Assembly (NCBI GenBank): GCA_965235115.1
Contig: OZ249445.1
Location: 8,122,001 to 8,186,000, forward strand
Reading direction: 5' to 3'
From: Laetmonice hystrix
Lineage: Eukaryota
DNA length: 64,000 nucleotides
A program made the translations under genes and the position numbers. Shown here one piece after another: positions 2,990 to 47,569 of the stretch. Within the stretch, counting starts at the first letter, position 1; each line of letters begins with the position of its first letter. The notes beneath the pieces are model-generated. The model saw nothing but the letters and a program-made list of their open reading frames with translations, ran no database searches and was not told the DNA's origin.

Positions 2990-3040
2990 AGAAAGAGAGA
3001 GAGGGAGGGACTCAGACAGAGAGAGACAGACAGACAGACA
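2990..3040. repeat. (GA)n/(GACA)n microsatellite
   Basis: Seen directly in sequence. Confidence 0.85.
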
Positions 3041-4116
3041 CAGTCAGTTAGTTTTGATCAGAGACCTGTGTTTTGATACTTCCTCTTTCCCTTCTTTTTA
3101 TTTTTATTATCATCTCATAGCCCCCCCCCCCCCCACCCACCCACCTTGGAAAGCAAGTGATCCTGCCCTGCACACATGACTGGCGGTCTTCTGACAGTGA
3201 CAGCGGCCCCACCCGACAAAACTCGACACTCGTCTCGAGATCAGCGCAAGACTTGCTATGCCTTGGCTAACGTTACACGTCTGAATGTGGCAGACGACTT
3301 CTTTTCACATCTAAAAAGAGTAGATCTAAGCCTAAATGAACACTGTTATTAACCTCTCCAGGATCACCCATGTAAACACAAGTCTCTCGAATGAATGGGA
3401 CGAACTCCGCGTTTCTCTGTTTACAAACAACGCGTCCTTATAAATATTCAACGTTGGCCTACTAACCTGTTTGAGGGAGCCATTCCAGCACTGCCCTTCG
3501 ATCCGACTGCCAATCATAAAATCGGGTCAAGACACAATGAAAATCGGTCATGACGTTTTCGCGAAGCCTTCCAATCAGCTACGTCCTTACCAAATATTGG
3601 GCCATGTAGCAGGTCATGGAAATCCAATGAATACTCGCCACACTACTGTACACACTTGAAAGGATAAACACTGAAACTTTTCAGCCATGTGGCAAAATAC
3701 AGTCTACAATGACAACACAGCGGCGGAGGCCCAGCCTACTGAGGGAGGGGCCCCAGCAGGCATAATTGTGCAGCAAAGTGGCTTTTATTCCCGATAATCT
3801 TCTTCTTTTAGCCTATTTTATTAAGCTTCTAGAGCACGTTGTATAATGAAACTACTACTTTTTAACTAGTCTACGGTACTTCGCTTGCCCCCATCCTAGC
3901 ACTAGGCCTATCTTATAATATTATGGAAAACACAAAAACATTTTCATCTAGGCCTATACTTGTCTCAGGGAAGAGATAGTAGTTACCGACAGTTACCTGC
4001 ATAAATTTTTACAACACTCGTAACAATTTGAAATCAAATTTTTGCTTAACATGAAAATTGGTGGAACTGACAAAATCCCCCAATTAGCCTATATTTGCCA
4101 ATTTTAGAGTTTATTA

Positions 4117-4999
4117 GTTACCATGGCAAGCGTAGGCCTATAACATTGAATTTTACATGTGTGTTTGGAAAGAAATCACCGAGGTCTTTCATCTGAGCTA
4201 TGACATGTCTTGATCCGCTAATAACTTCATTCAGTATGTTGAAATAACTTGATTCGTTGAACACCCCCCAAAATGATGGGGTGAGCAAGGATGGTTCATT
4301 GTTACCATGGAAACCTAATAAAATAATTTTGATCTCTTATGTCATTAAGGTACAAAACACAGGTACATATTAATGACAATAAAAAATAATGGAATATCTA
4401 ATACTTTTGTTACTATTGAAACTGATGCGGGCTTGCTACATAATTTAAACATTTTATTAGTTACCATGGCAACGAGATAGCAACAACATCTCTTTTTATC
4501 CATTTCCTTAAAGTGGCCTCTGAGCTCTTTCATATGAGATATCTCGTGCACAGATACCTAAATAAATGACTCTGGTGTGTTGAAATATCTTAAATCTTCG
4601 GCCTTCCTACAATATCGAGTGGAACTGGAGTTTGGCACTGTTACCATGGAAACGATCGACCTCAATTTCCATTTCATATGTTATTCAAATTCCAGACATA
4701 TGCATCTGTCAAACTGCATGTGTAGACATGAAGCATTTATAACACTCCGGTTCCTGTGGCAACTTACAAAGTAACAATTCATCAAAAATCACCAAATTGA
4801 GAGAGTTTACTCGTTACCATGGAAACCGGATAACCATGACAACAGAAATATTGTATTTTCTGGAATGTACTCTGTAAGCGCTTTCATATGAGCTATCACG
4901 CAATCTATTCTGTGGATTATTCGCTTCTAGGCAATACAAAATATCAGTTTTCCCTAAACTACCTAAAATACAGAGGTTGGTTTTTGTTACCATGGAAAC
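4117..4999. promoter_or_regulatory. Array of six X-box-type palindromes GTTACCATGG(A/C)AA(C/G)
   Basis: Copies start at 4117, 4301, 4460, 4640, 4813 and 4986. They match the RFX X-box consensus GTTRCCATGGYAAC closely. Probably part of a transposon subterminal region. Confidence 0.6.
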
Positions 5000-5186
5000 A
5001 GTGCAGTTGTGGGTAATTGCCGACCAGATAACTGTCGGAAATAAAAAATTGAGGATTTTTCCTGCAGTTTGGTACCAAGAAAGTGAGCTAACAAGGGGGG
5101 GTCCACGGAATCCAATTTTTGGAGGGGTCATGTGATGGACTAGTGGGTGTGCTGGGTGATTAACACATCTCTGCCGTGTTTTACAG

Positions 5187-5458
5187 AGAGTGCCATACAA
5201 GCGTTCCGACGAGCGTCTCTGGTTCTGGTGAATGGCGCTCTGGCCGGGCGAGCCAAGCCGTCAGACCCGGGCAGCGGGAGATCCAAACTGCCGCCCATAG
5301 AGGTGATCTACGAGGACGACAGTGAGGAGGAAGAGGAGGAGAAAAAGGAGGAGGAGAAAGAAGAAGAGATGAAGAAGGAAGTGGTTGAACTGCAGGATAA
5401 CCTAGCGGCGAATGGGATCCAGAACGACGAAAAAGTGGTCGTCGTCTCCCGAATATAA
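5187..5458 (+). CDS. Terminal coding exon of an unidentified upstream gene (acidic tract, C-terminal VSRI)
   Basis: Acceptor TTTTACAG| at 5186; open GC-rich frame ...RRASLVLVNG...EDDSEEEEEEKKEEE...VVVVSRI* ending in TAA at 5458. No upstream exons could be identified in the window. Confidence 0.6.
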
Positions 5459-5799
5459 CTCTATACATTTTTATCGGTGTCTATAATAGTTCTGATGTCA
5501 CAAACAAAGGTCACTATCACTTACTCCTTCGGACAGGATGTATTGCAGGAACATATTATTAATCTAACTCGCTAAACACGATATTTATCTTCGTAGGAAG
5601 TATCTGTCTGATGTTTGCTCTGAGACTGCGAAACTTTGTTGAGGTCATCATTTAAAAGTAATGTAGATAATGTAGAAAACCTGGACGAACTCTTTCTGAA
5701 AAGCCAATCAATCAACTAGGAAATACTATTTCAGGTATCGGCAAGTACAATAGTTTGATAATATAATCAGCGATACATAAGTCTCGGCTATTACCTGCC

Positions 5800-6358
5800 C
5801 ATTCGGGATTCCCTCGGGCATATGACGTCATATCTGCATATACCCTCGGGTGAAATGGGCGCCATTGGCAACCAGATACATGGCGAAATCGACCTGTGTA
5901 GCGAGGCACTGAGTGAACCGTCATATCCCATCGAGCCAGAAAGTAGTGCATTATTGAAACCTGCTTTTTAGCATCGTATGTGCAAATATATATTTTGTGG
6001 TATGAAGGGGAACGTTTGAACTGAAAAAATCAATTACCTAATTGACCTAAATGGGCGTGATACTGTAATTTATCAAATTATGGGAAGCAATATGGCCGCG
6101 CCCATGAACGACAGTACTACGACAGATGGTACGACTACTTGTATCATGAACATGATACTCTCGTAATATTGCCCCCTGACTATGGGGAAAACACTGGAGG
6201 CCTATTTTAGTTGCTTTCATGCCTGATGCAGGCAAAATACTTCAAGCACTGCCATGCTGGCGAGAGTCCCAGATAAATGTACCCGAGATGCAATGCTCAA
6301 AATGGCGCCTATTTCACCCGAGGCTACTTTCGAAGATATGGCCGAGGATTCCCGAATG
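5800..6358. mobile_element. 559-bp non-autonomous TIR element with 9-bp TSD
   Basis: Imperfect ~60-bp inverted arms 5800-5866 and 6301-6358 (CATTCGGGA...CCTCGGGTGAAAT(G/A)GGCGCCATT); direct repeat TTACCTGCC at 5791-5799 and 6359-6367. Confidence 0.75.
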
Positions 6359-7067
6359 TTACCTGCCAAGGCCATATTATTGCTATAGAATCTCACTTTT
6401 GGTGTAGTTTCTGCAACATGACCCCTACGGTGTTGATGAGGTGTCAACAGGCTCATAAAGTAATGAAGACCTCGTTAACCCTTCAAGGTCAATGCCACGG
6501 TTAGCAAGGTCAATCGATGGATCTTGTACGAACTTTGTACGCGATATGATTATGGATGGGAGTAGTCGAAATTTGCCGATTTTAACCCATCCTTCCATGA
6601 TCTAGCAAAGCTCATGATTATTATAACCTCGTTTTAAAAGGAAATAAAAGGAAATAAACTACTAAATTTGACACAAAGACAGGTTATTACTCGATATTGC
6701 ATGACGGCACGTAATCAAGATGATTATTTTTGCTGTGATGATATGCTGAAGGCGAACTGAGGGCATACTCATGACACCGGAGACACCTCGCGTCTCCATG
6801 CCATATTCACGTTAATACCTTGCTGCTATAGTATATGTACTATCAGAATAGAACACCTTGGGTCGAACCGTTGACATTTATTCAAACAACTCATCAAGAT
6901 CCAAATGATATATGTATCTATGTGCATCAATTATCTTCAGGATTCCAACATTTACGTCTCCGTTACAGTCACAAAATCGTCTCTTAGCAAATGTTACACG
7001 GTAATGCCCACCAGTCAATATTGTCTGACAGTATTTAATAATAGCCCGTGTTCAACGGCTGCGTTAA

Positions 7068-8135
7068 AGGGAAAATGACAATACAATTACAGAAAAAATA
7101 ATCATCTTATACCCTAAATTAGGTACAAATATAATCGTTTTGCTTTGGCTAATGACAAAAAGCGGGTATAAGACGATCGTCTTTTTCATCAATGGAATAC
7201 ATCCAATTTCGCCCGCAGATTTGGCAAGGGAATATACCCAAAAAGCAGTAATTAGTAGCAGCGTTCTATAGTATAAAAGAACAGTATTTCTTCAGTTTGT
7301 ATAGGCCAGGCACACAGACCGTGAAATTCTAAGCAAGTTAAAAAAGATTTGAACACAATTGGTGCGCAAATAGTTAAGATATAAGCACTTTAGTGCCGGA
7401 GCCTGCTGCTGTGTGATGTTGACGGAGCTCAGCCCCGCTGGGCCCACTCTGACTACGACCGGGCACTGAGATCGCGGGCAGTGTCAGTGCAGACCTGTTG
7501 CGTTTAGTTAGCCTTTTCAAAAAGGTTTAGGGTTTACCGTTACGGTTATGGAGAGTGATAGGGCCTAGTTACATTACAAAGGAATTTTTTTGACTGAGTG
7601 ATTTAGCCGACATCGATTTACCGCGCGAGGAGTCGTCCTACTCAGGGCTTGCGGTCAGGGTGCATTCACCCGGCCGTCAACACGCGCGTGCTGGGACACC
7701 CCGGGGGACCCGGACCATCGGCCGACCACCTGACCCTTCCTGTCTGTGTGCTAGGCCTACTCGTGGGACTGACCGGCATCGCCCACCCGCCCTGGCGGCC
7801 TCTATAGCCTAGCCCCGACAACCCCTCAATTGATCAATTCAGGATCGGTTCGCGCATTCTCAAATAGATGGCACAATGACGTCAATTACTTCCGGCCAGC
7901 GCCACAATGGCTGCGCCCCTAAAGCCAGTGATTTTTTACACGGTTGTCATGTCGACATATGACTTCTTGGAATGGAGGGACATTTATTTCCAACCACTAC
8001 TCTGAAAGGTGAGTATATATAGAGGCCTTGCAGCTGTCCAAATGTGATTTTGGGCAATACTTCTCCTTTAAGGACTTCAATTATCATATAATTAAAAATG
8101 CCGATTTGAGAATTTTGTGACAGTTTACCTTCCCT
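7068..8135. mobile_element. Kolobok-type non-autonomous element (TTAA target)
   Basis: TTAA|AGGGAA at 7064-7073 and TTCCCT|TTAA at 8130-8139. Short TIR and a GC-rich non-coding interior. Confidence 0.5.
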
Positions 8136-9808
8136 TTAACAACTTCTTGTACTCTCTTGGCCTGCTATGTATGTAAGAAGACTTGTTAATGAAACATACA
8201 GTTGGAACTTACAACATGTTTTGATTGCAGAACCAAAATTTTTACATTGTAAACTATAACGGAAACGTGATACTTCGTCATGTCTTAAATACAATTGAGA
8301 ACTCCAGGAGGCACGTTTGTATAGTTACACACGTTCAACATTCTTACCCTTACACGAGATGAACAGTTAAAGACCCATATAAATACACTTTACATGAATG
8401 AGTATACCTTATTTGCGGGATAACACAACCAATTTACTCGAGTCCAGAGAAGAATGCTTCAGAACACTTCCAGTTTCCCTTAGGCGAACATAAAAACTAT
8501 TTCCTTATCATTTTGTTGCTCATTAATACTGATAATATTGCAACATGGCAAACGTATAACCATTGCAGTTTGTAATTCAGAAGGACTGAACGCGATGGGA
8601 ATGCCCATGTAGTGGGATTCCTGTACTGCGGGGGTGGTCGGACTCTTCTACGAATTGCAGAGACCTTGCAAAGGGGACACCCCCGAAATTTAAGGTGCAA
8701 TTTGGTGCATTTCTGAGCAAAAAATGCTGTATTAAACGAAATGTCAAAAGTGACCAGCAAAAAAAAAGGCTCGACGAAGGGGGGGGGGGTTGCTACTCCC
8801 CCCCCCCCCCAGGATCGTCGTTTCGGATTTGCGTTCGTCGTTCCCTATTTGTATTCCTCGATTTTGAGTTAGTGATCGTCGGTTTGCTTTCGCGAACATT
8901 GTTTCTGTTTTTTCTTTTTGCTTTTGCGTTAATGATTGGACCTAACCGGCCACCTTAGTAACCTCTGGAAACATAAGTAACGGTCCTAATAAAAGTATAC
9001 TAATCAATGTTTCAAAGGTCTTTTAACATCGAAAGTTGGGAACTCTCAATAATATCATTTGATAAATTTGTTACATCTGCAAAGGTCAGAGCAGTTGTCC
9101 CAGACAGGTCCGACGGGTTGCAACGCCCGAAGGTATTATCGACTCGGAATTATTTCAGAAGCCATATTTGTAATTCACATAAACCTAAAGTTTACTTCTT
9201 GCTCCTGTGACTTCCAATACGCCTGCAGTTAAGAAAGAACTACTTAGACCGGGTTTAAAGGTGAACAATTTTAATATTGTTATTGCCTTTCAGTAATAAT
9301 GATTTGCAAAAACTCAAACAAAAGGTAATTTTCCAAAATACAGCCTGTTTTAAACAGTATAAAACATCCTAGAGTAGGCCGCCACCGCAATCCCATTTTA
9401 TTGGAAGACGACACGACCGTCATGATTTATAGGTAATGAGACTTTGAATATCATGCTGGGTGTTTTAGACGCTATTCTAGACTAGTATAGAAGCAAGATA
9501 TGTGATCATAATCTCTAGGCCCATCACAAACGGAACACCTTGAAGCGTACAGCGATATAGATCCACGAAAAATGACACTCCTTGAAAGTCAAAGATCAGG
9601 GATAAACCGGGCCACATACGTCCTCCATCAGCTCCGCTGACGAGTTCTAATCCCCAGAATCTAGACACAGTAATCCAGACACGGCCTGACGAGTCCAGTC
9701 CGTGTCTGATTGGGAGCAGTGTGTTAGTGCGAACACGCGTCAAGTCGGCATGAAACATTGATGTGAAATTTCTTGTCGACCCGTATAAGTTACTCGCTCC
9801 AATATTCA

Positions 9809-10004
9809 NNNNNNNNNNNNNNNNNNNNNNNNNNNNNNNNNNNNNNNNNNNNNNNNNNNNNNNNNNNNNNNNNNNNNNNNNNNNNNNNNNNNNNNNNNNN
9901 NNNNNNNNNNNNNNNNNNNNNNNNNNNNNNNNNNNNNNNNNNNNNNNNNNNNNNNNNNNNNNNNNNNNNNNNNNNNNNNNNNNNNNNNNNNNNNNNNNNN
10001 NNNN
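9809..10004. other. Assembly gap (196 N)
   Basis: Run of N. Confidence 1.
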
Positions 10005-11587
10005 AGGGCAGGTCATGTTTGTGGAATGAAATATCAAATAGATTTTAAGCCAGCTGTAAACAAATAAATTTTGAGACGGGTGTAAAAGTGCAGCTTCAGG
10101 ACGAATAAACGAATGTTAATGTTCTTTTTTTACATGACGAAAATAAAGAATGATCTGATATCCAGTGAAACAAAAGGTGAAACAATTTGATGGAGCCTTT
10201 GTGATCTGATCCAGCAAAGGCTGTCGTCGGTCAAAGGAAATCCTGGTTAAAGTAGCCTGTATTTTTTCACGAAACTCCTCCCGAAAACCAAAGTTATTAC
10301 ATTCTAATCGTTGGCCTCGCTTTCTTAGGTCTATATTCATATTCTAATCATATATATCAGAGATGCCAAGGCAGAGATAGTTGAGAAAAGTAATCCGAGT
10401 GCGTAAATTGAGGGTCTAAGGGTCTGATAAAACCATCCGTATTATATCCGTCCCCTTACCAGGTTTGGGAGTTGGCGTTCCATGACATATATTCATCAGG
10501 TCAGGGTCCTGATTGTGAATACTCCCCCGCAGTCACGTGATCAATCGCTGTCAGAATGTCCAGAAAGGTCAACACAAACTGACCAATCAGGATGACTGAG
10601 GTTGATCCCCATGGGGATCTCCTTGAGAGGACCCCTCATCTCCGCCCACCCACAACGTCGTGATCAATTAAGCTACATAATACAAAGTTTTGTATCCATG
10701 TATGCATAAATGTATCTACATAACGTAAGCTATATTAATATAGAATTGTCAAAAGGTCTGTAGCATAATTTTATTAGGTTGCCTTATAGGACACAGTGAT
10801 CCAGCCTACTACAACTATTGAGGCCTATATCATTCGACTGGGAATAATGGATCCCCGAGATATTTGAAGGAATTTGTAAAAAATACACCTGAACTGAATG
10901 CGTGCCCTTGTTAAGTTGTTTCCTCAACAAAAACAGCAGATTAAAGTACAAACAACATTAGGACAGACCGACAAAGGCAAGGTTGAGAACGGCTCGTTTC
11001 ACCGGCGGCGAGTTACAACATGACAGAGAAAGTGTTCAGACATGGTGAGTTATGTAACGGGACCGCCCGGAGTGAACACATCACTGTTACAGCCAGCTCA
11101 GGTTATGCCACAGCAATTTATCTGATGGGACTGGAAACTATTTGATTCCGGGAGCTCTTCTTTCCGTCAGATGTTGTTGATTGCCAACTTGACACACTTT
11201 TCTATGCTTGCTCTATGTCGTCCCTTTGCACTCCCTCTCAAAATTGCGACACACCCTCTTTCTTCCTCGTTGAAAATCGTATCTCATAGCATCTAGCCAT
11301 TCAAGGAAGTTTAAGTGTGAGGGTGCATCTTCCCTTGACATGATTCAAGCTCCCTCCCCTGCTATATCCGCCCACCTGTTGGTGACGACTTGTTCGACAT
11401 TGTGCCCCCACCCCACCCTACGTCATCCCACCCCACCCCTCCCGGCCCCGCCCCCGCGAACTCTCACATCGTAGCAACCATGATCAGATTGCTGATAGGA
11501 ATTGAGACACGTTGATTTTACTTTTGTTCCAAGACCTGACAAGAAGAACACGTTGTGTGAGTTTGTCACCCAGGCCAGACGCCTCCC

Positions 11588-11641
11588 TATATATCTACAA
11601 CTCGGCCAGCAGTCTGCCATTGCTGTCGCTGACCGCCACAG
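11588..11641 (+). promoter_or_regulatory. Putative TATA box and short 5'UTR exon of the peptide precursor gene
   Basis: TATATAT at 11588-11594, possible donor CACAG|GTGCGG at 11641/11642, upstream GC boxes near 11445, and acceptor GGTCAG| at 12038 before the ATG exon. An alternative donor CATG|GTGAGT lies near 11044. Confidence 0.3.
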
Positions 11642-12067
11642 GTGCGGGTCTGGTCATACGTTCCCCAGCTGATCCCCTGAAGGGCCGCCACTAGATCCCC
11701 CTGAGAAGATACCCCAGACAAGTATCACCACATTTCCTACTCTGTACATACTTTTGTTGAAGATTACGATCGGCACCGAGTTGTATAGAACATACGGGCG
11801 GAGATAACGGCTTGTCGGCAAGCCTTGCTCAGCTTTGACCACCAGGTGGCGTCTCCGAGCGAGCCAGGCCCAGGAACATCGTCACTGGCCAAAAGTCAGG
11901 AGTCGTGTAGCGCTACTGCCGCGATCTGACACTGACTGAACGGAGCCAGCAGATAACCGTCCCGGGGAGAACAAAACAACTCTAAAAATAGGAGTGTATA
12001 ACAACACGATAGTTGTAGATTACGTATTGTTGGGTCAGAAACATCAAAGACTGAAAGACTTGGAAAA

Positions 12068-15000
12068 ATGTGCCCACAATGGAAGTTGTGGCTAGTGTAC
12101 TTGATGGTGCTTATGTTCGCTCTTGGAAGTGCACATACTCAGGCCGGAGTGTTGCGCCAGTGGCTCAAGCAACGGGCTGCTGACGCAAAGACCACGTCAG
12201 ACAGCCTCGATGGTGAGCATTGCGTCTTTCTCTTCACAACCCTATCGCTAATGCCAAGACAAGTGTAAGCGTAATGTAAAGTTCGCTGAGAAGTGAAGTA
12301 TCTTAAGTGAATTATAAATAATTTTTAAAAAGGTAAATGTGAAGGCACTCAGCTAGTTCCACTCCAGCGATAGGCTTTATACGACTCTAGCTTTCTGAAA
12401 GAGGTTATAGTATGTAGTCTCAGTAAGTGTTGCACATCGTGATTTTAAAAATAATTCATGGCTGAATCATTCTTTACAATATTGTTGGGATTAGAGTGGT
12501 GAAGCGTTCGACAGTTTTCATAAACTGCTCTTTGGTATGATAGTGGCAGACCACAGGAGAGCAAAAAAGAAGGCTCCTTTCGATTTTTCAAGCAGATAAG
12601 GACACACAAGGAGATCGGTTCGTAATTTCATTTGAGTAAAACATCATTTCTCATCAGAAATGTTCTTTATATGTTATCGTGCAAACAAAATCAGCAAAGA
12701 ACTAAGCAAGTAACATCATGGATGACGCTAGATTACTTTTTGTCGGGAATTGATGACGATTTCTCCTAATGGCACAGGGAACATTGTTTTTTGAAACAGC
12801 ACAAATATAGGTGAAGATCAGTTAAATAACACGAGAAGGTGGTGGTACACAGCCCGCGGAGGAATCTACAACCTCTGGAAATAAAGTGAGCAAATGCATT
12901 TAAAACAAGGAAATATAAAATAAGGCGACTTCGTGTCAAGCCGGGTTTACGCATGTATACGTTTCCGTTATCCGTTTCCGTTCTCCATTTCCCATCTAAA
13001 GTACATGTATACAATCGAACTACGAAACGTACACATGGAAACGCTCCCATAGGAAATAGGCATAAACGATCGAATCAGAAACGGATAACGGAAACGTACA
13101 CATGGAAACTCGGCTTCCCCATTTAGAAATTAGCGTCTATTTTGCCCCTAAAACTAAGCACGCTTACCCTGTTTGATATAGCTCGGGCAGCGAGGTGCGC
13201 GTCGCTCATCGCTCTCAACGGAATCTGAAAACAAATGCAGAGGTTGACTCAAGCGTCCAATATGGCGGACCCTTGAAGGATTGGAGGGAAGCTGTGCAAA
13301 ACATTTTATGGCACACGACAAAAGAGTCCAGACTTTGCACGGATTTCCTGGAGAACCTTGCTGACTGGCGTTCTCGTCGTTTCGTTGAATTCACAGAGGA
13401 ATTCCATATGCTCCGTTTTGGCCAAGTTTAGTCCAAACACGTGCGCTCAAAATGTTACCCACTGTTTTACGTGCATGACTCTTAGACTGGCGATTTTAAT
13501 ATTTGACAAATTCCATCGTCGAAAGTCTTCCCAACTCTGAAAATAGGCGACACTTTTTGAAAACAAGACAGAAAGGACTAGGTGAACGAACAGGCGGGTG
13601 GGTGGGTGGGTATTTGGGGTTTTACGCCTTGCAACAGCCAGGGTTATATCACGGCGGTGAAGATGATGCTGAAAGTCAGTTTTTCTTGGTGGAGGAAACC
13701 GGAGTGCCCGGGGGAAACCACCGACCTTCGGGAAGAACGAACAGGCAATGGGAGACATTTTTGAAAGTAGATTGCTGCATTTGGATGTTTTAATGCATGT
13801 TATGGCACTCCCACTCAGGGCAATGGATAGACAATATCTTTAATCTCTACTCAAATGTAGCCAAGTAATCTCCGAAAGACCAATGCATACGTTTGTGTGT
13901 CCCTAACCAGCGGGCCAGGTCGAATGTACTCCGTCATTATGTCCATCAGTGGGAACCAAATTTAGCCTATAGCAGATAATCGTCTGCCTTTGTCAGCAGC
14001 CCCGCTGCCAAACACCGATTCAGACAAGACATGGTGTTGCTCCCCGTTTCTTTTATTTCGATCACGTCACGTGCCCCTGCTCCATCCCAGGTCGATACGC
14101 CTTTATATAGTTGTATAAATGGATATCAATATGGAGTCGGGCGTTTTAGTTTTGGATGTAGCGACAGAGCCATGATACTTGGCAGCAGATCTGCTGGCCC
14201 ACAGGTAGTGCTAATTGTAGTACACGTTAATGGCAGTACAGGTTGATGGTAAGCATGGTCGGCGCTGGCGCTGAGGCTCCCGTGTTAACCTGGCCCTCCG
14301 GAATCATAAACAGTGCAGAGATATACTGATACAACCACATATTTTATATCATACCGACCAACCAATGCGAGAACAGGATAAGACTCGATGATGGTAGATC
14401 TACTATAGGACAAAGACGCCTTTCTGACAATAGGCCTATAATAGAAGATCAAACTTTTCCTTACAATACACGGTTACAAGTCATCCACCCAATCTATGTG
14501 GCTCATTATACTCCGGCACAAAGGCGCCTTATAATGCCATGATGTTTGATATGTCAGTAAACTATATAAAGTCAAGTAAGCGGAATAGTTACCAACCGAG
14601 CTCTTACGTATTAAGGCTAACTATAAGGTGCATGATAACTTTTGATATACAACATGTATTGACTCGGCGCTAATACTCAATCCAACCAACAAAGCTAGTT
14701 GTTTTAAACACCATCCAATACATCTTTATTTATCACGTAAAATATTCTAAAGAAACACATATTTTGGGACAAACCACAGTCATGACCTAGGGTCTAAATC
14801 CGCGCTCCCACTGTGCGATTATTTCAGAGTCGGCCGAATATTTCTCAATCGCTGGGAAAAGTCGGCCGAACAGGAAAGCTTGTCAAACTTTTTCTCGGCC
14901 GATTCACGAGTCGGCCGATGAAATTTAATACGCTGACCAATCAAACAGCGAGTACGAATGTGCGTTTCTCATCTATTGTTATCCTGTCGTGCGTTAAAAT

Positions 15001-17657
15001 CCCCATTGAAAATGCATTGGAGTTAACGATACGACAAGTTAACGAGATGATGAGAAATGCACCCCAGGTCTTCTACTAAGTCGTAATAACGACATACTAA
15101 GTCGTAATAACGAGATAGCTATGTCGTAATAACGACATACTAAGTCGTAATCAGCTATGTCAGCTATGTCGTAATAACGACATACTAAGTCGTAATAACG
15201 ACATACTAAGTCGTAATCAGCTATGTCAGCTATGAGATAGCTATGTTGTAATAACGACATAACGACCATGAGATTGCTAATTTAAAGGTTGGAAGTCACT
15301 CTAATTTCGAGTAGGCCTATAACAGATGGAACCCATTTCAGGAATCTGAGTTCTCGCAAAAGTATAACAGACTGAACGTCTCCCTTTAAAATAGAAAGCA
15401 AACGTACGCTACAAAGACAATCACCTTGGAACGCCGAACTACGAGAAGAGTGACAACAATCGAAATATCGGGCCACGCCGGATACGAATAGTTGTTGTTG
15501 TGCAGCTCAAAGATTGGTACATTTTTAAGACTGCCGAGCGAAAGTCTTCGAGTTCCGGCGCTGTGATTAGTGACAAAAGCCCGTATCGACAGGCACGGAT
15601 CGCGAGCCTATATGCTTTCTTGCTGTGTTTTCCTGACTCAGATAGAAACGCTTCTGTTTATCCGTAAATCTTCGACTCCGAGCTGGCGCCGTATATGTAG
15701 AAGTTAACCACACATAAAGTGACGTGGTCGCCTAATCGCATCAACGTTTCTAGCCGATTTACATGGTGTTTTGTTTTTTTCGGTGTGAAGGCATCACATT
15801 CCCGTATCTGTGGTATTAATTTACGGTACTGGTGTCACATTGTGCATTGTACTTTCAGCATGACAGATACCGAAAGTAACTCGAGTGTCACTACATAACA
15901 ACATGCAGTTATATCATGTTATCGTCAAGGTATCGATGGCTTGTTAACTAGGGTGTAGATCTTAGAGGAACTGTGCGAACGGGGCATTTCTGTTACAGCA
16001 ACATCGTGTTGGTTACCCTCATTTGGCGTCAAGAGAAAAGCGCATCGGTGTCCAGTGTCACTCCCTAGTAACAAAAAATAAAGCTGTGAGGTTAGTATAG
16101 GGTGGGCCTACTCGACAGGTAACCCCCAGACATGCAGGCCTGTGGACCTATTAGATTTTAAACGCAGATCCGGGGGGGGGGCTCGAATGGTTCGTACCAC
16201 CACCCAAATAAAGAAAGAAGGGGGGAAAATGAAGAAGGTAACGGAACCAAATTAACGAGCTTAGGGTTTGGGACTAGCTAGAATAGAAAATTAAGTTACA
16301 TTTCAAAAGTTTCCAGGGGGCATAATTCGAACCCCCTCTTGCAAAATCCTCGATCCGCCCCTGGATAGTGAAATTCTTCCCGTCTTCATGGGTCTACATC
16401 ACTACACCATAGGATGACTGTAGGCCTATAACACCTACATTGATGGAGATAAGGCATGTTTGTATTGCTAGATAGTGTCAGGTAGACGAGATTAAAGCTG
16501 TCTATTGCCAGCAACTATGATAGGCATGGGCCAAATGCCTAGCTCCCTTTTGGAAAAGTACATCTCGTTGGCGCCTTACGCTTTTGGCGTGTTGAGTTTG
16601 ACGCAGGTAGGACGTATTATAGTGCAGCTCAACTGTGGTGAGATTATGACAGGGCCACCTGGTGGTGAAGGTGGTCAGTCTGACAGGAGATGATCCACGC
16701 CCTCGATCAATTAAACGTGTCACTTCATCTCATCCATCATACCCTGCCCACGGATCGACGTAAAAAATGGCCCCGCTACGACCTGCCGCTTAAAACCCGT
16801 TAACCGCCTAATTGGGGCGCCACACCGAGTCCCACGGCTGACCTCAGTGTCGGCACGACTGGCTCCCAACGAGCTGAGGTGTTTTGTCATCACGTGTTTC
16901 CGATTGGCCCAACTCTGCCGTTTATCATGTTTCTGTCAGCGGCATTGGGAAAAGTCGGAATTGGTACGGGCACGATATAGTAGGTCCATTGTGACATTGC
17001 GGAGAGGCTAGCTACAAGTGATGATACAAATCACGCCGTATCATGTGACTGTCAGCTGGTCTGCATGCAGTTTCTGGTCTGTATTGGCATAGGATATCTG
17101 CGGCACTTGTTGACAAGTATTTGTCTACTGTCATGTGATGTCAGAAACAAACGCGCAGTCGATATAGAAGAATTATTCTGAATTCGTTTCATTTTGAATC
17201 GAACAGGCCCTATATAAACTATATTTCAGAACAATGATAGAGGAACTTTTGTGAGCAGGCTGAAATCGTCAAGTCACATTTCTTCGAGTTTTCATATTCC
17301 AGTTTAATAAACCCCTGTTCTTTCAAAGGAAAATTGAGTTCTCTGGCTTAAACCAGCGCATTGCTTTACTGACCAGTAGGGCATCGGCTGGGGCCTATAA
17401 TGCAGAGAACCGTTGCATGTTTAATGCATTAAACCCCCTATTTACATCTCCTCTGAGATATTTCTTTCCCATGATGACGTCATAATGATTGGTGTTTTCG
17501 TCCTGCAGGTCTTGATGGTGCCTTCCATCGGTATAGGAAACAAGCACCTCCAGCCGTACGATGTGGGGGCGGTAGCGGCAGAAACCCATACGAATGCAAT
17601 GATGGCCTTATGGGGGTATGGCTGCGGCTGATGAAAAACCCAGACTACTCGGACTGA
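12068..17657 (+). CDS. Candidate secreted peptide (neuropeptide/hormone-like) precursor, 97 aa
   Basis: Exon 12068-12212 encodes MCPQWKLWLVYLMVLMFALGSAHTQAGVLRQWLKQRAADAKTTSDSLD (n/h/c signal-peptide pattern) and ends at a phase-1 donor G|GTGAGC. Exon 17509-17657 follows the strong acceptor GTTTTCGTCCTGCAG| and continues in phase: GLDGAFHRYRK-QAPPAVRCGGGSGRNPYECNDGLMGVWLRLMKNPDYSD*. The joining of the two exons is inferred. Confidence 0.55.
12938..13116. mobile_element. Palindromic MITE (~180 bp)
   Basis: Arms AAGCCGGGTTTACGCATGTATACGTTTCCGTTATCCGTTTC and GAAACGGATAACGGAAACGTACACATGGAAACTCGGCTT are near-perfect reverse complements. No clear TSD. Confidence 0.65.
13596..13734 (-). mobile_element. 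5'-truncated SINE (V-domain-like) with 12-bp TSD
   Basis: Contains GGTGGAGGAAACCGGAGTGCCCGGGGGAAACCACCGACC (reverse of the GGTTT.CTCCGGG.ACTCCGGTTTCCTCC core of V-type SINEs) and a (CACC)n tail on the minus strand. Flanked by GAACGAACAGGC at 13584-13595 and 13735-13746. Confidence 0.7.
15074..15262. repeat. Irregular ~21-bp minisatellite with palindromic core GTCGT-AATA-ACGAC
   Basis: Repeated ACATACTAAGTCGTAATAACG units interspersed with CAGCTATGT. Confidence 0.8.
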
Positions 17658-17705
17658 GCCGACCATGGACTCGGACTGAGCCGACCATGGACTCGGACTG
17701 AGCCG
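17646..17705. repeat. 22-bp tandem repeat (~2.7 copies) overlapping the putative precursor stop codon
   Basis: ACTCGGACTGAGCCGACCATGG repeated; the first TGA is the stop at 17655-17657. Confidence 0.85.
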
Positions 17706-18548
17706 CCGGCCACCTGTTCCATGGAGTCCAGACTGCAGATCGTTCACAGTTTGAACCACAAAAACTGCGGGAAGAGTTCACATGCTCTAAAGTTTCGTAC
17801 ATAAGAGGGGGAGCGGTAGTGTCATTCTGTTCTGACGACCTATTTAATTCCACAAGGAACATTCAGTGTAGAAAAACAATCAAACGGTGAAGTTAAAAAC
17901 GGAGAGTAACGTTCCATGAATGTTCTTGAAGTGAATTTGATGTTCAGCTGAAAACGGTTGTTTTTTCGTATCATATGTTTTTACAAAATTCTATATTTCT
18001 AGTGTGTGAAGGGAATAAATGCGACACGTAAGACTCTTGTTGATGCCCTTTTTTGTAGTTCAAACAGGGATACGAGGCGCCTATTGATGAGCGAGTTGTT
18101 CGCATACCTGTAGATGTGCGACAAGAATAAACTCCTCCATTTGCGACAAACATTGTCCTTATGATTTGCAGAGTGTGCAAAATTTAATTATTGACCTCAT
18201 CCAGCCCAACGATTTGTCTTCCTCATTTGCACATCAGGCTTTTCTCTGACCACATAATAAGATGTTGTTTCAAACCATTCTTAGATAGTTATTGGCGCAT
18301 ACCGTTTAGGCTTAAAGCCGGAAAATGTTTGAATAATGAAGAAGGCAGAATTTGATCACGTTTAATTTAATAACCGACTGACAGTAGTTTTATCTAGTCT
18401 CTTCACTACACGCCCCCGTGTGTGTGATTCTGCTCTTACAAAAAGTTCCGATTCCCTTTGTAATATCTCGAGTACCTTGAATTCACCTCTGCATCTTGCT
18501 GCAGTGTATTTCTAACGTCAATGAGAAGGCGGCCGGAAAAGTCGGCTT

Positions 18549-19155: not shown

Positions 19156-20147
19156 AGGTAAGATGGAAAAGAATGTCGCTTGTGAATCCGTTTCTATTCA
19201 ACCATTGGTTAAGTCATCATGCTCTGGATTTCAATTTCAAATTGTCGAACCATAAACATATTAAATAAAGGTCATATCTCGAAAAATATTTTCAACGCTT
19301 TCCGCTTAGACCCGTTTGTTTTTATGGAGCATTAAACGTTCTGCATTATTGTGGAACGAACAATGGCAGACCGATATCAAACAATGGTTGTTTTCTGTCG
19401 TTGAGAGGGCGTCCGTAACGGAAAGTTATTCGTAGTTGATAGATGTAAGATTTTGACAATGTATGTGACAAGAGATTCTCTACCCGACTTCGCTAGTATA
19501 TTGATGTAGCCTGTCGCTACCTTCTGAGTCCCACCAGCACCTATAAATACAAACAAATATATTGGGAGAAAACCAGTGCATCAATGGACTGACTATTCTA
19601 TAAAATAGTAAGGATCTCGCGTTATAGATATACGATGATGAAATATAGATCCGTATAGCCCCCGTTGTGCATGGCAAATAAAAGCAGATTATCCCACCCC
19701 CTCCCACCCACGACATGCTGCCGAGATAAGACACCAACATCAGGCCTTTATCGAAGAAAACGCCGATCATAACAACTGATACCACAAGGAAATTAAACGA
19801 GAAAATTAAACTAAAAACGCAAGGATGGTAACGGGTTTCATCCATCTAGAACGCCCACAAAAATTGTAAAAGGAGTCAAGGTGAGATGGTCGAATTACTA
19901 ATGAAATCGATAGTAAACGCCTTATCTACTTGGCATTTCGTAAAAACAAAATCACTCATCTATAAAGAAATTTCCTAAAACTTCTGGCTCAATGAAATCA
20001 CGAGTGGCAATCCAATAAATTACTTTGACATTGTTTGTCTCTTAAATGTGGACAAGACTTGGGCACGGTGGATACCAATGTATACGAACACTGCATCATA
20101 ATGGTAGTTTATCAAATGTGATCGGCTGGGCTTGTGGTAGCCTGTTA

Positions 20148-20288
20148 CCACGGTAACTCATAATACAACATACAGGCAATGATTAGCTATACATCCACGG
20201 TAACTCAGAATACAACATACAGGCAATGATTAGCTATACATCCACGGTAACTCAGAATACAACATACAGGCAATGATTAGCTATACAT
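20148..20288. repeat. 47-bp tandem repeat x3
   Basis: Unit CCACGGTAACTCA(T/G)AATACAACATACAGGCAATGATTAGCTATACAT at 20148, 20195 and 20242. Confidence 0.9.
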
Positions 20289-32791: not shown

Positions 32792-35700
32792 TCATCGATA
32801 TGGAGTAACAAACCTTTTGTTAAGTGTTGGTAATGCAGTCGTATGACTTCCACCATATAGGCCGAATTCCTGGGCTTGTTGCAAGTTGGGATGTAACCCA
32901 GTGTCTTGTCGGACGTACTGGCCGCCAGATGGGGCAATATCCATATAGCTCATACTACTGCCGTAAGGCGTCACCCCAAACGTCGACCCTGAAACATGTC
33001 AGCAATTTAAGATATATAATATAATTCGAGGCTCTGTGTGTTTGTGTCTCGTGTGTGTAAAAAAGATAATTAAACGTACAATCGCAAAATAAAGCTTACA
33101 CCGGTACCTCAGTTGGTTTCGCAGTTAGCGTTAAATTTAAATTATTAACGGTTATCAATTACACCACACTAGAGTTTGTCTCGCACCCGGAGGACCGAGG
33201 CGATTCTCCAATTCTGGTGGCTGATAACAAGTATCGGTTCTACAATAAAGCTAACCATGTGTAGGGCCAATAGATATGCTCTACATAATGGCGTAGGCTA
33301 CAAGTTGTCTGCCTACCTGAGAGTGTTCCTGCCATGTTGTCACACCCAGGGCTGTAGAACCCTCGCGCGTGATCAAACGCTGACCTACAAGAACCGAAAG
33401 CGTCCTGGTATGACCCACCCGGAAAGGAGCTCTCCCTTCCGTATCCGTCGTAAGATGTTCCGTATTTGTTATAACCGGGGACTCCAGCGTAGCATTCCGT
33501 AAATGAGTGATGCGATCGGTTTTGGTCAGTCAAGTATGATGTGGGTGTCGGATGACCACAAGCAGCTGCCATATTGATACCGTTCCCCGAAAGCTGCACT
33601 TGAGGAAACCCATTTTGATGGAGCTGTGAATCATTAAAATTCGCAATCCTTGGGTTGCATGTTATCGAGGTTAGCGGAGTCCCGGACGCCATTAGGCCTA
33701 AGTCCGGTGGATATCCAGCGAGGCCTGCTTGAAGCGATGAAATATAGTTATCATGACAGTTTGAGCCAGAATTGAGTGAAGAGACATATTTTAGTGGTGA
33801 ACGTTGTAAATGTAGAGGAAGGTCAGGTGCTCTGCACGTGGGTTGGTCAGTGAGGTTTGGCTGAACACGTGGAGCAATGGCTGCCGCCGGACGGGTCAAG
33901 GTTACCGTCATGCGGCCGCTCGCAGCTAAATGATGTCGTCCCGGATTCTGATGTGGCAGTAGTTCCGGATCCGATTTGTAAGGTCTCTTGTCTGCCGACA
34001 CTGTCAATCAAAGCAAGGACTGTCAGTGATGCTAATGCCGCATAGTATGCCCCCAAAATGAGTAGGGGTGGGATGGGGGGGGGGGGTTGTATCTTTTAGA
34101 TCTATCCTTTCAAGCAGGAAAAAAACTTCATAACGGGGGGGGGGGTGTAGCTAGGGGGTGGGGAGGGGTTGCCTGGAACCCCCTCCCCAAAAAAGATAAT
34201 TAGGCCTAATAGATAATTAAATAACTAAATAGATCTAAATGAATTACTGATGGGTAGAGTCGCCAACTATACTATACTCTGCCTGGATTCGAGTGGTCGT
34301 TTTGGGAGGCCCCACCCACAATACACCAACGTGCCACCCATTCTCTAAACGGTCAATATACACCAGCGCCTACTGGCGGCACTTTTATGAAACCTTGAAA
34401 GCTAAAACGATTTTACATCAACAACACACGTTCGACACGATTCCTTTGACAATTCACTTAGAATCTGCAGGAAATCCGATCATCATTTCAATCGTTGACT
34501 TCTTAACTCCCTCTTGACACGCGATAAGCATTATTTTGTTCGTCGCTATGAACGTTTGAAGTGCCGAACCGAAGCGAAGTTCCACCGCTGCCGGTGAATC
34601 GTGATTAGTTTCCGCTAGATGGCACGGAAAAGGGTGCTGCCATCTATCGTTTTGACTTGGAACTCAATATTAGTTCAGAGTTAAAACGATAGATGGCAGC
34701 ACCCTATTCAGTGCCATCTAGCGGGTATTATGGAACTAATCAGTGGCCGCCTATGGCGCTACAATCGGCTGTCAAAGCGTAGGCCTGCGCAGCGCATCGG
34801 CACTTCAAACAAATAACGACAAACAGAAACATCTATATAACTATCATCAAGCAGGGATAAGGTATCAAAGTCTGAAATGATCATAATATTTAATTATCGA
34901 CTATCGTTACAGATTGTAAGAGAATCTCCAACTAATCCGATATTAGCCAAACATGTGTTTTGGTGAACTCGGCCATGCCCTTGCCATAGTTATCAACGTT
35001 TCCACCAGAAGGCGCTGCCGCTTTTCGACCGTGTGGCCTAGGCCGTTGCTGGTAGACAGGGTCATTTTGTCCAAATCAAGGGTGTAGCCGGGGGGGGGGG
35101 GTTCCGGGTTGCCTGGGCCCGTTTTTGTTGTGTTGTGTTGTGCTTACCGTGAGCTGAGCTGAGCTGGGCTGAGCTGAGCAAGCTCTTTCTTGCTCACGTG
35201 AGCACATGTATGCTCACGATGAGACGGGTTTGGGTTTGGGTTTGTTTACCCGGAGCACAATCTCACATGGGGTCCCATAGCTTGCTCACGCTGACGCTGA
35301 CAAAACAAAAACGGGCCCTGGAACCCCCCTTCCAAAAAAGATAATTAATAGATAAATAAATAACTAAATAGATCTAAATGATTGACTAATTGGACCCCCC
35401 CCCCCACACACACACACCATTTCAGTTGGACCCCCCCCCCCTTATCTCAGTTCTGCCTACACCCCTGGGGAGGGGGGTTTGCAACCCCAGTAACACCCAC
35501 ACACACACACAATCCGCCACCGTCCTGTAGTGAAAGGTTTGTGGCAGTGTGGGGTGGGAGCAAAGATCAATGAAAGAGGGCATATTTTACAGTCTATGCC
35601 ATTGAATACCTTTAGGTATTACTTTCAGGTTCCCCATACAGTGAAACTGTATACCATCTAGTTGTAGACAAGCAAGGTGAATTTCCAAGGACACTGTCCA

Positions 35701-38700: not shown

Positions 38701-41700
38701 CATAATTAGAATACCCTACAGGGGCGGATCCAGGATTTTCGCTTGGGGGGGGGGGGACGAAGTCAGAAAGGGGTGGCTGGTCCTGAACTGCTGATAACTA
38801 AATAATGTTTTATACAAATTTCAATCTTCATAAATCTCCAGGTTTACTGTTAGACCTTACTTTACTGCTAGAAAGGGGTGGCTGGGTTCATTTAGGCCTA
38901 AGTTATACTATACTTGTCCAAAATTTAGGGGGGCGTGCCCCTGTCCCCCTAGATCCGCCTCTGCCCTATATGCCCTGGTAATTGTGTGAGCCTATACCTG
39001 GTCAAAGTTGGCCGAGATAACGGTGTCGAGGATCCTCTGGCAGTGGGTCCGGTACATCATAATGAACGTTTCCACCTGTGGGCAGAGATCGGTTGGTCAA
39101 CCTCACTGTCCGTAGAAATTACCAAATTCTCTCAGTGATACCTCAATTTTTGTTTATTTTAAATCTGATTTATATGTGAGTAAGTTGATTCTCAAAATAT
39201 AAGTAGGCCTACTAGGAAGTTCATACCTTGTCCATTTCTAGACTGTCATCCAGAATAAGGTCTGAGGCCTTTGGAAAATCAGGTAGCAGGGTGCCAGTCT
39301 TGGAACTTAGCGAGTATTTCCGATTTGATCCCTGAAAATGGGAATAGAGTTTTTACTTATAGAAATTGGGCCTACATAAGTACCGTATTTTTTTCTTTGG
39401 TGTGGCAAGCCTTTCAAGTTCATAATATAAAATTTTTACAGAGTTGTCTACCGGCAGTCATGATCGGAAATATTGGTCCTCTTCCAATCCTCAAGTATAT
39501 TAGGCGGCATGGGTTGGCGTCGTAATTACGACATAAGATTTTATTTTTAAAATTTAAGGCCAAAGGGATCTAGGCATAAGGAAACAATCAGTAAGAGGGC
39601 TCTGTTCAAACAGGACGTTCCCACGCCCAGTAACGTAAATTTCTAATTCTGTTTGCCCTCTCGTTAGGTTCGATTACCCAAGGTCAAATATTGATACAGC
39701 CTCGTATTGGGCTGGTTGGGTAAAGAACGGAGGGTCGGTGTGGGCATTCCGCGGCAGACGACACGTTGCCTTGACGCAAAGCGTTTGTGCTGGCGCCTTG
39801 AACCTTGTCGCCTGTTGGCAATTATCCCATAAGAGACATGTGTAAACTGTTGAGGCCTGGTGAACGGAAGAGAACGTCGCACTCCATGCCAGGAGGAGTG
39901 CAATCGGTGATATAGGCCTGGGTCTGTACGTACAAACGATTGATCCGAGTTGCTAAATCTCCATGGTAACTGATCCACCAAATTGGATGATAAAAAATAC
40001 TAAGAAAATAGTAAGAAATACCTGTCACTATTGTATTCCTAGAGAACCCCGATCCACTGTTTCCAGACTCTCCTCCCTCCCCCTCCACCCCCCCCCCCCC
40101 CACACCCAAATAGCCCCCCCCCCCCCCACACACACAAATAAATAAACTTATCCCTATCCCTGACCCTGGCCTTGCGTGAGAATGCCATGGGAGAATGACC
40201 TTCAGGGCCGTCCAGAACGCTGTATAGCGGCCTCTTTACCTTACGGACGCGGTGCCAGACGGCCTTTGAAGGCGTCCTATTGAGAGCATCATAATACCAC
40301 AGAGTACCCTACATCTACCTATTCTGTGATTATACTGCGTCCGAAACGACTGACCCCTGGTTTGATTCGTTATTGATTCGAGCCAGCTTGTGTCACGTAA
40401 AGTGCACAAGATAATGCCAGGCTTTGTCATGATGCACGCGTCTTTTGCTGAAAAAAGTGTACCTACCTCGGTTTTTACTGTTGTCCCTGAAAACCTGAAA
40501 ACAAAATAATATGTTTATTGTATGCTGAACATATAATATAACGATATAATAATAATTATACAGTATCATTAAAACCGTTTACTGTCAGGTTCTACTAATA
40601 GACCCATAGTGATACTAATCTACTTGCTTGGAATGATTTATGTAGACACAGCGCCTATTATATTCAGGCTCAGTTACACGGAGGCTTTATAGAAGGAAAC
40701 GGAACTCCTTTCAAACGTCAAGTACTCCACATCCCAATAATATACAAGGCATTGTATGTACGACCGCTTGTCTCGTGAATAATACACTTTCTATAGTTCG
40801 GGGGGGACTGCAATCTCATTGTCAGAATCATATGACACTGTTTAACTTTAGAGGTCATTAAATAGCACAAGGACGCTCGCCCAAAAGAAGCACATGATTT
40901 ATATTTGGAAACAATGATATCAGTACGATGTCTATGAAATGAGCGCAGTAAAATCTTACCGTGTGAGACCTTTGCCTCGGTACACCGAGTGGTAGTATAT
41001 GGACGTCTCCTTTATTCCTATTCCATAGTAGTGATACCTGTAGACATTATAAGGGAAATCAATCACGAATCACACCATGTTAATTGTCTTAGTTATAAAA
41101 ACAACGTATGATACAGTTAGCGAGGCGAAATTGTGAACTTACTTTGACTGCCCTCTTGTCCCCAACCTCCTGGTCGTCAATTTTGGAAATCGCTGTCGAA
41201 TAATCTGAAACCCATCAAAGTAATGAAAACGAGGAGGCACATGTAATCGGAATCGTCTAAGGAAACACTCAAAGTTTGCTTCCTGTACAAAACCGTTTGA
41301 CCACATCACTGCCACTCCACATGGAGGAGTGATGTCTCCGGGGCGTGGTCAGGATAGGTCTGTGGGAGGGTTTGGACACCCCCCTAAAATAACTAAAAAA
41401 ATAAACTGAAAGCGTATTCAAGACACAGGTTTTTGTCCATCAGACTGGCAATATAGGGCCTGGTAATGGCTGAATGCTTACCTTGCCGAAGTTGGCGGCC
41501 CCGACCGGAGAATAACCATTCGTCTTACACAGGTCGAGATAATGGGTGTATAGAACGCAACGGGGAAGGCACACCCCATCCGCACGCTCATAGTTCTCCT
41601 CCAACCTAGAAACAATCAATAGGATTGTTTTCAGAATGTCTGTGACACCTTTGTAAGCAATAGGATTGTTTTTTTTTGTTGGGGAAAGGTAACCGTGGTT

Positions 41701-46642: not shown

Positions 46643-47569
46643 TTACTCCAAATCTGAGGCTAACAATTGGGGTTCCTCCTCAATGCATGACGTTGGTGTG
46701 GCTGGATTTGATATGATAGGTTGATAGTCTAACAGGTCACTTTGAGTTGATTCATTATTTTGTTCTCGGATGAGGTAAGGAATGCCGTCCTCTGGAAGCA
46801 GTCGAGAAAGGCCATAGCTAGAGTAACACTTGTACGAGATAGCCGCGACGGCCGCCATCAACACAAAGACGGCTCCGATATGCCAGATGAATATCAAGGT
46901 GGCCAGCTGGACCGAGTCATCGTTGTTTGGATCCCAGGGCTGCGAGCCGGGGACCGGGTTGTAGAGGATGAAGCCAATCCCGATGAACCAGCAACCTTGA
47001 AGAACGACGCTGTAGATCCTACAGAGACAAATTAACACACTGCCAGGGTGATGTAACTCGAGCAGTGTGAACACCACACACGCCGCTATCACGTACACAA
47101 GGGCTATGTGTACAAACACTTCCAGAGGCTCCATCCCGATTGCATGGAATCGAAATAAGATTGCCTCAGCCAGGAACGCCAGCGCAGCCGCCAGGTAGTC
47201 GGTGCCAGCCGGGAGCACGCCAGGCGCACGGTTACAGACGATATCCACCAACCCGACCAGGAAGAAAAATGAATACATTGTGATATGCTGTAAGTCGACG
47301 ACCCTAAACGGGCCCCAGTCGGCGTGGCCATGGGTGGACGAGTATATCTCCACACCGATTCCAATGGTGGTTACAGTGATCTTGACGGCGGCCTCGAGTG
47401 GCCAGCCGACACAGACTCCACTCCCTCCACAAGAAAACACCTCTGTGCTCAAGTACTTGGTCCTGGACACCCGACAAACCAGCAGTCGGCGCACAATCTG
47501 AGTCATCCACCAGATTCCGAATGATAGAAAGAATGATCCAGGGAGGACATGCCCCATAAAGCTTCCCAT
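46643..47569 (-). CDS. TMEM45: TMEM45-family (DUF716) multi-pass membrane protein, intronless, 308 aa
   Basis: MGSFMGHVLPGSFFLSFGIWW...LQHITMYSFFFLVGLVD...AFLAEAILFRFH...LQGCWFIGIGFILY...WD...FIWH: His-rich TMEM45 motifs in one continuous ORF. Confidence 0.9.
   Translation of the reverse strand: MGSFMGHVLPGSFFLSFGIWWMTQIVRRLLVCRVSRTKYLSTEVFSCGGSGVCVGWPLEAAVKITVTTIGIGVEIYSSTHGHADWGPFRVVDLQHITMYSFFFLVGLVDIVCNRAPGVLPAGTDYLAAALAFLAEAILFRFHAIGMEPLEVFVHIALVYVIAACVVFTLLELHHPGSVLICLCRIYSVVLQGCWFIGIGFILYNPVPGSQPWDPNNDDSVQLATLIFIWHIGAVFVLMAAVAAISYKCYSSYGLSRLLPEDGIPYLIREQNNESTQSDLLDYQPIISNPATPTSCIEEEPQLLASDLE

Follow-up and report, generated by a model that had tools for sequence, protein, structure and literature searches.

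A single-copy, two-coding-exon gene of Laetmonice hystrix encodes a candidate signalling-peptide precursor of an orphan annelid family

We evaluated a 64,000-nucleotide (nt) stretch of the genome of the annelid Laetmonice hystrix (contig OZ249445.1 of assembly GCA_965235115.1, forward-strand positions 8,122,001 to 8,186,000; hereafter the window, numbered from its first letter), and found on its plus strand a gene with two coding exons for a precursor of 97 amino acids (aa) that is likely to yield a signalling peptide. The coding sequence runs from the ATG at 12068 to a donor at 12212 and, beyond one intron, from an acceptor at 17509 to the stop at 17657, and splicing these phase-matched exons by script gave a product identical to the 97-aa string read in an initial annotation of this DNA. 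From N- to C-terminus, the precursor comprises a predicted signal peptide, a short pro-region, the basic site R-Y-R-K and a C-terminal 38-mer with two cysteines. Coding exon 1 (12068..12212, ATG at 12068-12070) holds 48 codons in frame and ends in phase 1, one base into the next codon and directly before GTGAGC. It encodes a predicted signal peptide of ~26 aa (12068-12145), identified by inspection and a hydrophobicity scan (a Lys at position 6, a 14-residue hydrophobic core and the small-residue site T-Q-A followed by G), and then 22 aa of pro-region; a candidate core promoter, the TATA-like CTATATATC, was read from the sequence at 11588..11596 on the same strand, ahead of a putative non-coding leader exon that the start coordinate 11588 of the initial annotation implies. 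The phase-1 intron (12213..17508, 5296 nt) contains high-copy repeats.

Coding exon 2 (17509..17657) is the terminal one, supplying the end of the pro-region, the processing site, the peptide and the stop. Its acceptor, ttttcgtcctgcag followed by GT at 17509, stands behind a pyrimidine-rich tract and CAG, and the frame resumes with two bases. The predicted processing site R-Y-R-K (17529-17540) is followed directly by Gln, the first residue of the 38-aa C-terminal peptide (17541-17654), within which lie a Cys-x10-Cys loop (17562..17597, with Cys codons at 17562-17564 and 17595-17597) and a 17-residue core, N-DGLMGVWLRLMKNPDY (17598..17648), that is near-invariant in the family alignment described below; the TGA occupies 17655-17657. 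The first AATAAA 3' of the stop, a candidate polyadenylation signal, is at 18014..18019, with a second at 18126. Exon 2 is present in one copy in the 627-Mb genome, where neither the peptide nor the family profile as query found a paralogue. We also observed that a 22-nt unit holding the gene's last codons and stop (ACTCGGACTGAGCCGACCATGG) occurs three times in tandem at 17644-17710, such that the 3' untranslated region opens with two additional copies of the gene's end.

The first relative, P0001, came from a word-indexed search and is an open reading frame (ORF) call on two metagenome contigs, which must be host DNA. A profile search of 1.84 billion representative proteins revealed eight true relatives (E = 1.8e-29 to 1.7e-4) together with one unrelated repeat protein, and a further database search based on the alignment of the family yielded nothing beyond these. 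Because eight independent proteins match exon 2, the peptide exon is not a chance ORF. Of the nine members recovered, just two have a protein record, namely ELU12205 of Capitella teleta and KAK2148181 of Paralvinella palmiformis, each annotated as "hypothetical". Two further members are full-length precursors, namely P0005 (140 aa), from a Tara Oceans metatranscriptome, and P0009 (136 aa), on a 4.4-kb JGI contig (L008) where its ORF is uninterrupted over the intron position and is the longest of the contig, and thus transcript-like. P0001, P0002, P0004 and P0006 are ORF calls at exon level. The database protein P0006 (341-877 of L007, a contig of GCA_022702835.1) is a gene call with TGA decoded as Trp; the true family member there stops at TGA, directly after NPDYAD, and its exon begins at a phase-1 acceptor at 642. 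As for synteny, no ORF of the window besides the peptide exon matched the flanks of L002 (the 19-kb P0001 contig), L005, L006, L007 or L008.

Aligning the nine members, window included (alignment A3), revealed where the family is constrained. The Cys-x10-Cys spacing and N-terminal Gln described in the initial annotation are present in the window species and are not family-wide, with loops ranging from 7 to 10 residues and Gln directly following the basic site in four of the nine members. The main conservation, which that annotation did not single out, lies in 17 residues after the loop: every member continues with [NG]-D-[GS]-L-M-[GS]-V-W-L-R-[LI]-[MLI]-[KN]-N-P-[DE]-Y-x-[DEN] (the DGLMGVWLRLMKNPDY core) and the stop, which comes directly after D/E-Y-x-[DE] or one residue on. 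This post-loop tail is 19-20 residues long, 17 of them near-invariant, and the loop itself usually ends in a semi-conserved P-x-[YF]-[ED]-C. Ahead of the first Cys, by 4 to 14 residues, most members carry [YF]-x-R-x-R-K, and a basic site of this form or of the form R-R/K-K stands at the aligned position in 8 of 9. The predicted C-terminal peptide, 38 aa in the window species, measures ~32-39 aa in relatives with a clear basic site.

At the nucleotide level, just 73 nt of L002 align to the whole 64-kb window, these being the 3' part of exon 2 and nothing else, and since only the peptide core still aligns we take the window species and the source of P0001 to be far apart. Over the last 28 codons the two differ by 12 synonymous and 3 replacement changes, and of the 20 nucleotide differences 14 are at third positions of the plus-strand frame, a bias that decides for this frame over an antisense ORF overlapping it. 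Extending the comparison of the 17-codon core to six coding sequences, we found that any two of them differ synonymously in 2-11 codons and by replacement in 1-4, with synonymous exceeding replacement in 14 of 15 pairwise comparisons; silent sites are thus saturated and the core is under strong purifying selection.

Gene structure is shared as well. The annotated orthologues of Capitella and Paralvinella (115 and 125 aa) each have exactly two coding exons separated by one phase-1 intron a few residues before the basic site, and a phase-1 intron lies immediately 5' of the peptide exon in all five genomic loci (window, L002, L005, L006 and L007). By analogy, this shared phase-1 two-exon structure is the main support for pairing 12068-12212 with 17509-17657. 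Homologues and intron layout support the gene type first proposed for the locus, a two-coding-exon gene for a small precursor with a basic site and a C-terminal disulfide-loop peptide, and show the gene to be conserved. A scan of 3000-17500 for ATG-started hydrophobic ORFs with phase-1 GT donors returned three candidates, among which only the ORF at 12068 has both a strongly hydrophobic N-terminus and a consensus donor in phase 1. In the orthologues the intron measures 281 nt (Capitella) and 986 nt (Paralvinella); the window's is long because high-copy repeats inflate it (~12885-13278, 13476-13869, 14658-15248 and 16234-16430 in a genomic read-depth table). In L002, the contig of the nearest relative, neither tblastn nor a scan for signal peptides and donors recovered exon 1, and this contig probably ends before it.

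We also looked for signals of molecular class. A predicted signal peptide, a pro-region that varies between members, a conserved basic site and a conserved C-terminal peptide with one predicted disulfide together make up a prohormone-type layout. An AlphaFold model built with the family alignment has a helix on LMGVWLRLMK as its only regular element, and the core Tyr is flanked by acidic residues, making it a candidate sulfation site. In a language-model comparison, the neighbours of the Capitella orthologue were nearly all precursors of peptide hormones, drawn from many unrelated families (scores 0.86-0.89), with UTS2B at the top (0.89) and DH31-like, NMS, NPFF, NPY, NPS, CCK, NMU and PDH among the others, which weakly supports the hormone class and no particular family in it.

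Taken with its single copy, these features make it probable, in our judgement, that the gene encodes a 97-aa prepropeptide of an orphan family common to other annelids and some further marine animals, and that its product is a neuropeptide or peptide hormone. The central consideration is that a tail kept near-invariant across deeply diverged worms points to a ligand fitting a conserved partner, hence to a neuropeptide or peptide hormone. In the mechanism that we propose, the signal peptide would direct the product into the secretory pathway, where a furin or prohormone-convertase type enzyme would cleave after [YF]-x-R-x-R-K (R-Y-R-K in the window species) and set free the C-terminal peptide, 38 aa long in the window species. 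There, its N-terminal Gln would cyclise to pyroglutamate. One disulfide loop would form, after which would come a short amphipathic helix and an acidic end that is not amidated, with the Tyr of N-P-D-Y-x-D (N-P-D-Y-S-D in the window species) perhaps sulfated, and the invariant tail would dock to a conserved partner, most likely a receptor. More tentatively, and at somewhat less than even chances, we envisage an ancient hormone family, annelid and possibly spiralian-wide, that has gone unrecognised and combines a variable loop, the helical tail DGLMGVWLRLMKNPDY, a possibly sulfated C-terminal Tyr and an orphan receptor of its own. The gene's very small size, its dividing intron and an annotation that is no more than "hypothetical", in just two species, would explain how the family escaped notice.

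Several observations weigh against this interpretation. One relative has K-K and two have R-R as the basic site, which is not clear in P0005, and the AlphaFold model is of low confidence (mean pLDDT, the predicted local distance difference test score, of 60). All named members are annelid, and four members carry no species assignment, which limits the view of the family's range beyond annelids. The only sequencing runs covering the locus (three runs from one sample) are genomic DNA, as judged from an even depth of ~40-70x across the intron. Exon 1 has no detectable homology except a weak S-D-S-L resemblance and is not alignable, for which reason its pairing with exon 2 draws on phase, signal peptide and analogy.

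Among the competing explanations, a secreted peptide with a non-hormonal role, be it antimicrobial, a pheromone or attractant, or a regulator of an enzyme or protease, is unlikely in our view. Such a role would suit a small, predicted secreted, single-disulfide peptide with an amphipathic helix, and the homologues from whole-plankton metatranscriptomes are uninformative on neurons. However, immune and pheromone peptides usually evolve fast, whereas here 17 residues are near-invariant across annelid orders with saturated synonymous sites; the gene is moreover single-copy, and the charge of the tail, near neutral to acidic, is unlike that of cationic antimicrobial peptides.

It is rather improbable that the neuropeptide or hormone candidate is instead a highly divergent member of the known C-terminal disulfide-loop hormones (MCH, somatostatin/SSRP-like, allatostatin-C, urotensin II), an idea that in one form would make it the missing protostome counterpart of MCH. 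In its favor are a short precursor that ends in a loop peptide preceded by a basic site, the G-R-x(1,2)-Y held in annelid loops as a faint echo of G-R-V-Y in vertebrate MCH, the first place of UTS2B among the language-model neighbours, and the name that UniRef gives the Capitella orthologue ([quoted passage not shown]), an automatic label that we did not manage to reproduce. Yet the 17-residue tail stretch, the most conserved part of the family, is found in none of those hormones, and the corresponding Pfam models are silent on the proteins and at the locus. Pro-MCH (PF05824) matched neither the exon products nor the homologues, its genome-wide scan being empty at the locus even at E<=10, and Somatostatin (PF03002) matched none of the proteins at E<=10, its genome scan returning three sub-threshold matches, all elsewhere.

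The likeness to MCH is one of layout. Vertebrate pro-MCH and the ambulacrarian ArMCHP, Spnp14 and AmMCHP are also short precursors with a signal peptide (a predicted one in the annelid family), a basic site and a loop peptide at the extreme C-terminus, and the annelid family too has a single loop peptide at the precursor C-terminus behind a dibasic site. Ambulacrarian MCH loops have 10 residues, as in the window species, whereas loop length varies in the annelid family, and the MCH tail (3 residues after the loop in human MCH) is short against the conserved post-loop tail of 19-20. Published MCH-type loops have Met/Ile after the first Cys and a basic residue penultimate to the second, reading C-x-D-x5-W-R-x-C in echinoderms, and MCH-type signalling is reported in deuterostomes only (PMC4772807, PMC9793003). 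In A3, the first Cys is followed by G, R, K, A or N and the residue penultimate to the second is Y, F, G or S, so the MCH-like loop suggested in the initial annotation does not agree with the published motifs. Its comparison of LRQWLKQ in the pro-region with preprosomatostatin likewise falls away, this string being private to the window species and in no homologue.

Somatostatin is also a C-terminal loop peptide, and somatostatin-14 is also Cys-x10-Cys, but the somatostatin/SSRP-like core motif is FWK or C.WK.C inside the loop (PMC9048919) and Trp-Lys is absent from every loop of A3. Genes for somatostatin (SS) and for allatostatin-C (ASTC) have in common a phase-0 intron in the pro-region (PMC9048919), whereas the single coding intron is in phase 1 in the window, Capitella, Paralvinella, L002 and L007; both also lack the conserved post-loop tail of the annelid family. 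Capitella, in addition, owns a separate SSRP-like gene, whose peptide carries C-I-W-K-V-C, a C-x4-C loop (PMC9048919). In protostome ASTC the Cys loop is always of six residues and carries F-x-[PVLI] (PMC9048919, PMC8851493), whereas the loops described here have 7-10 residues and neither F-x-[PVLI] nor F-x-P.

Resemblances to other families were evaluated too. Tail DREP, a doppelganger-related peptide of annelids and molluscs (Koch et al. 2023, PMC10501145), is an orphan spiralian secreted peptide that also lies at the precursor C-terminus, with a single N-terminal Cys loop and then one helix, but when compared without formal alignment it differs in its Capitella gene (ELT87057, not ELU12205), its C-x4-C loop, its 53-aa peptide, its tail and a phase-2 intron near the C-terminus. 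The likeness to calcitonin/DH31-type peptides is no more than an analogy (disulfide loop, then amphipathic helix, in ~32-38 aa), and calcitonin differs in a C-x4/5-C loop at the very N-terminus, an amidated C-terminus and a position away from the precursor end. The identities SSRP-like and Tail, Triangle, Medial, Hairpin and CHH DREP were all rejected on sequence. A PDB sequence profile search returned nothing, and no Pfam model matched any family member above threshold, the only Pfam signal being a sub-threshold one of Calc_CGRP_IAPP on the Capitella pro-region (17.1 bits against a cut-off of 22.3).

Wrong pairing of the exons, with 17509-17657 terminating some other or larger gene to which the signal-peptide ORF at 12068 does not belong, is hardly credible: with genomic runs alone covering the locus the 12212/17509 junction rests on sequence, the 5.3-kb intron far exceeds those of the orthologues and exon 1 is without clear homology, but the annotated orthologues of 115 and 125 aa have exactly one phase-1 intron, the transcript-like homologues of 136-140 aa carry their own predicted signal peptides, the window's donor and acceptor phases agree, no better signal-peptide exon appeared across 14 kb upstream, and repeats explain the intron length.

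Beyond the peptide gene, the window contains RFX DNA-binding-domain exons at 41136-41207 and 41479-41610 on the minus strand, with scores exceeding the Pfam cut-off. On the same strand, a long ORF of low complexity at 33240-34007 may be the C-terminal exon of this gene. An RFX-family gene is therefore convergent with the peptide gene, as had been read earlier, at a distance of ~15 kb. Comparison of the C-terminal ORF did not place it in a subfamily (RFX6 or other), and the genome has at least seven RFX-domain loci. The accompanying idea that RFX regulates the peptide gene is left without support, since the peptide gene promoter has no X-box and the orthologues of Capitella and Paralvinella are without an RFX gene within 10 kb. 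Two X-box-like sites that are perfect palindromes and match the RFX consensus, GTTACCATGGCAAC at 4460-4473 and GTTACCACGGTAAC at 20144-20157, sit 7 kb upstream and 2.5 kb downstream of the peptide gene; about one would be expected by chance in 64 kb.

Further features were noted in the window. On the minus strand, an intronless ORF of 308 aa at 46643-47569 is DUF716/TMEM45-like (Pfam 1.8e-24), yet has no relative at the overly strict threshold of E<=1e-20 among 5.8 billion proteins. Long imperfect tandem repeats with open frames on both strands, one of SLYTTH type, occupy 56209-57268 and 60669-61245 and appear minisatellite-like rather than genic, while exon-like ORFs recognized by eye at 49707-51153, 55659-56072 and 62931-63191 (all plus strand) suggest an AMT-type ammonium transporter and a xanthine dehydrogenase/aldehyde oxidase-like gene. 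Elsewhere on the same chromosome, the minus strand of L009 (G000:C11:5620500-5626500) reads as a signal-peptide exon followed directly by LPPDFFRNG, which is identical to the sCAP peptide of Platynereis dumerilii. This identifies an sCAP-type precursor there and, like the annelid identity of the named orthologues, favors an annelid genome.

Turning to how the family stands relative to existing catalogues, neither its motif strings nor its accession strings matched in searchable full texts, a search that for the motif strings covers the main text of 8.4 million papers and to which figures, truncated files and closed-access papers, such as the 2011 Capitella/Helobdella survey, are out of reach. 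It is likewise absent from the searchable supplements of the Platynereis 2013, oyster 2021, Thiel 2021, Urechis 2020, De Oliveira 2019 and Koch 2023 (cone-snail "doppelganger") works. The proposal of a new or highly diverged peptide family is supported by the lack of any Pfam match and of any entry in the searchable neuropeptide catalogues, and we consider this probably an uncatalogued peptide family of annelids, perhaps of spiralians. Catalogues of spiralian neuropeptides are regarded as close to complete, and many G-protein-coupled receptors of annelids and molluscs are still orphans. A single-copy precursor whose 17-residue core is kept almost unchanged across annelid lineages that are far apart makes a strong candidate as the ligand of such an orphan receptor, and the core is conserved enough for one synthetic peptide to be used against existing Platynereis receptor libraries. 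As this family shows, short two-exon peptide genes slip past annotation.

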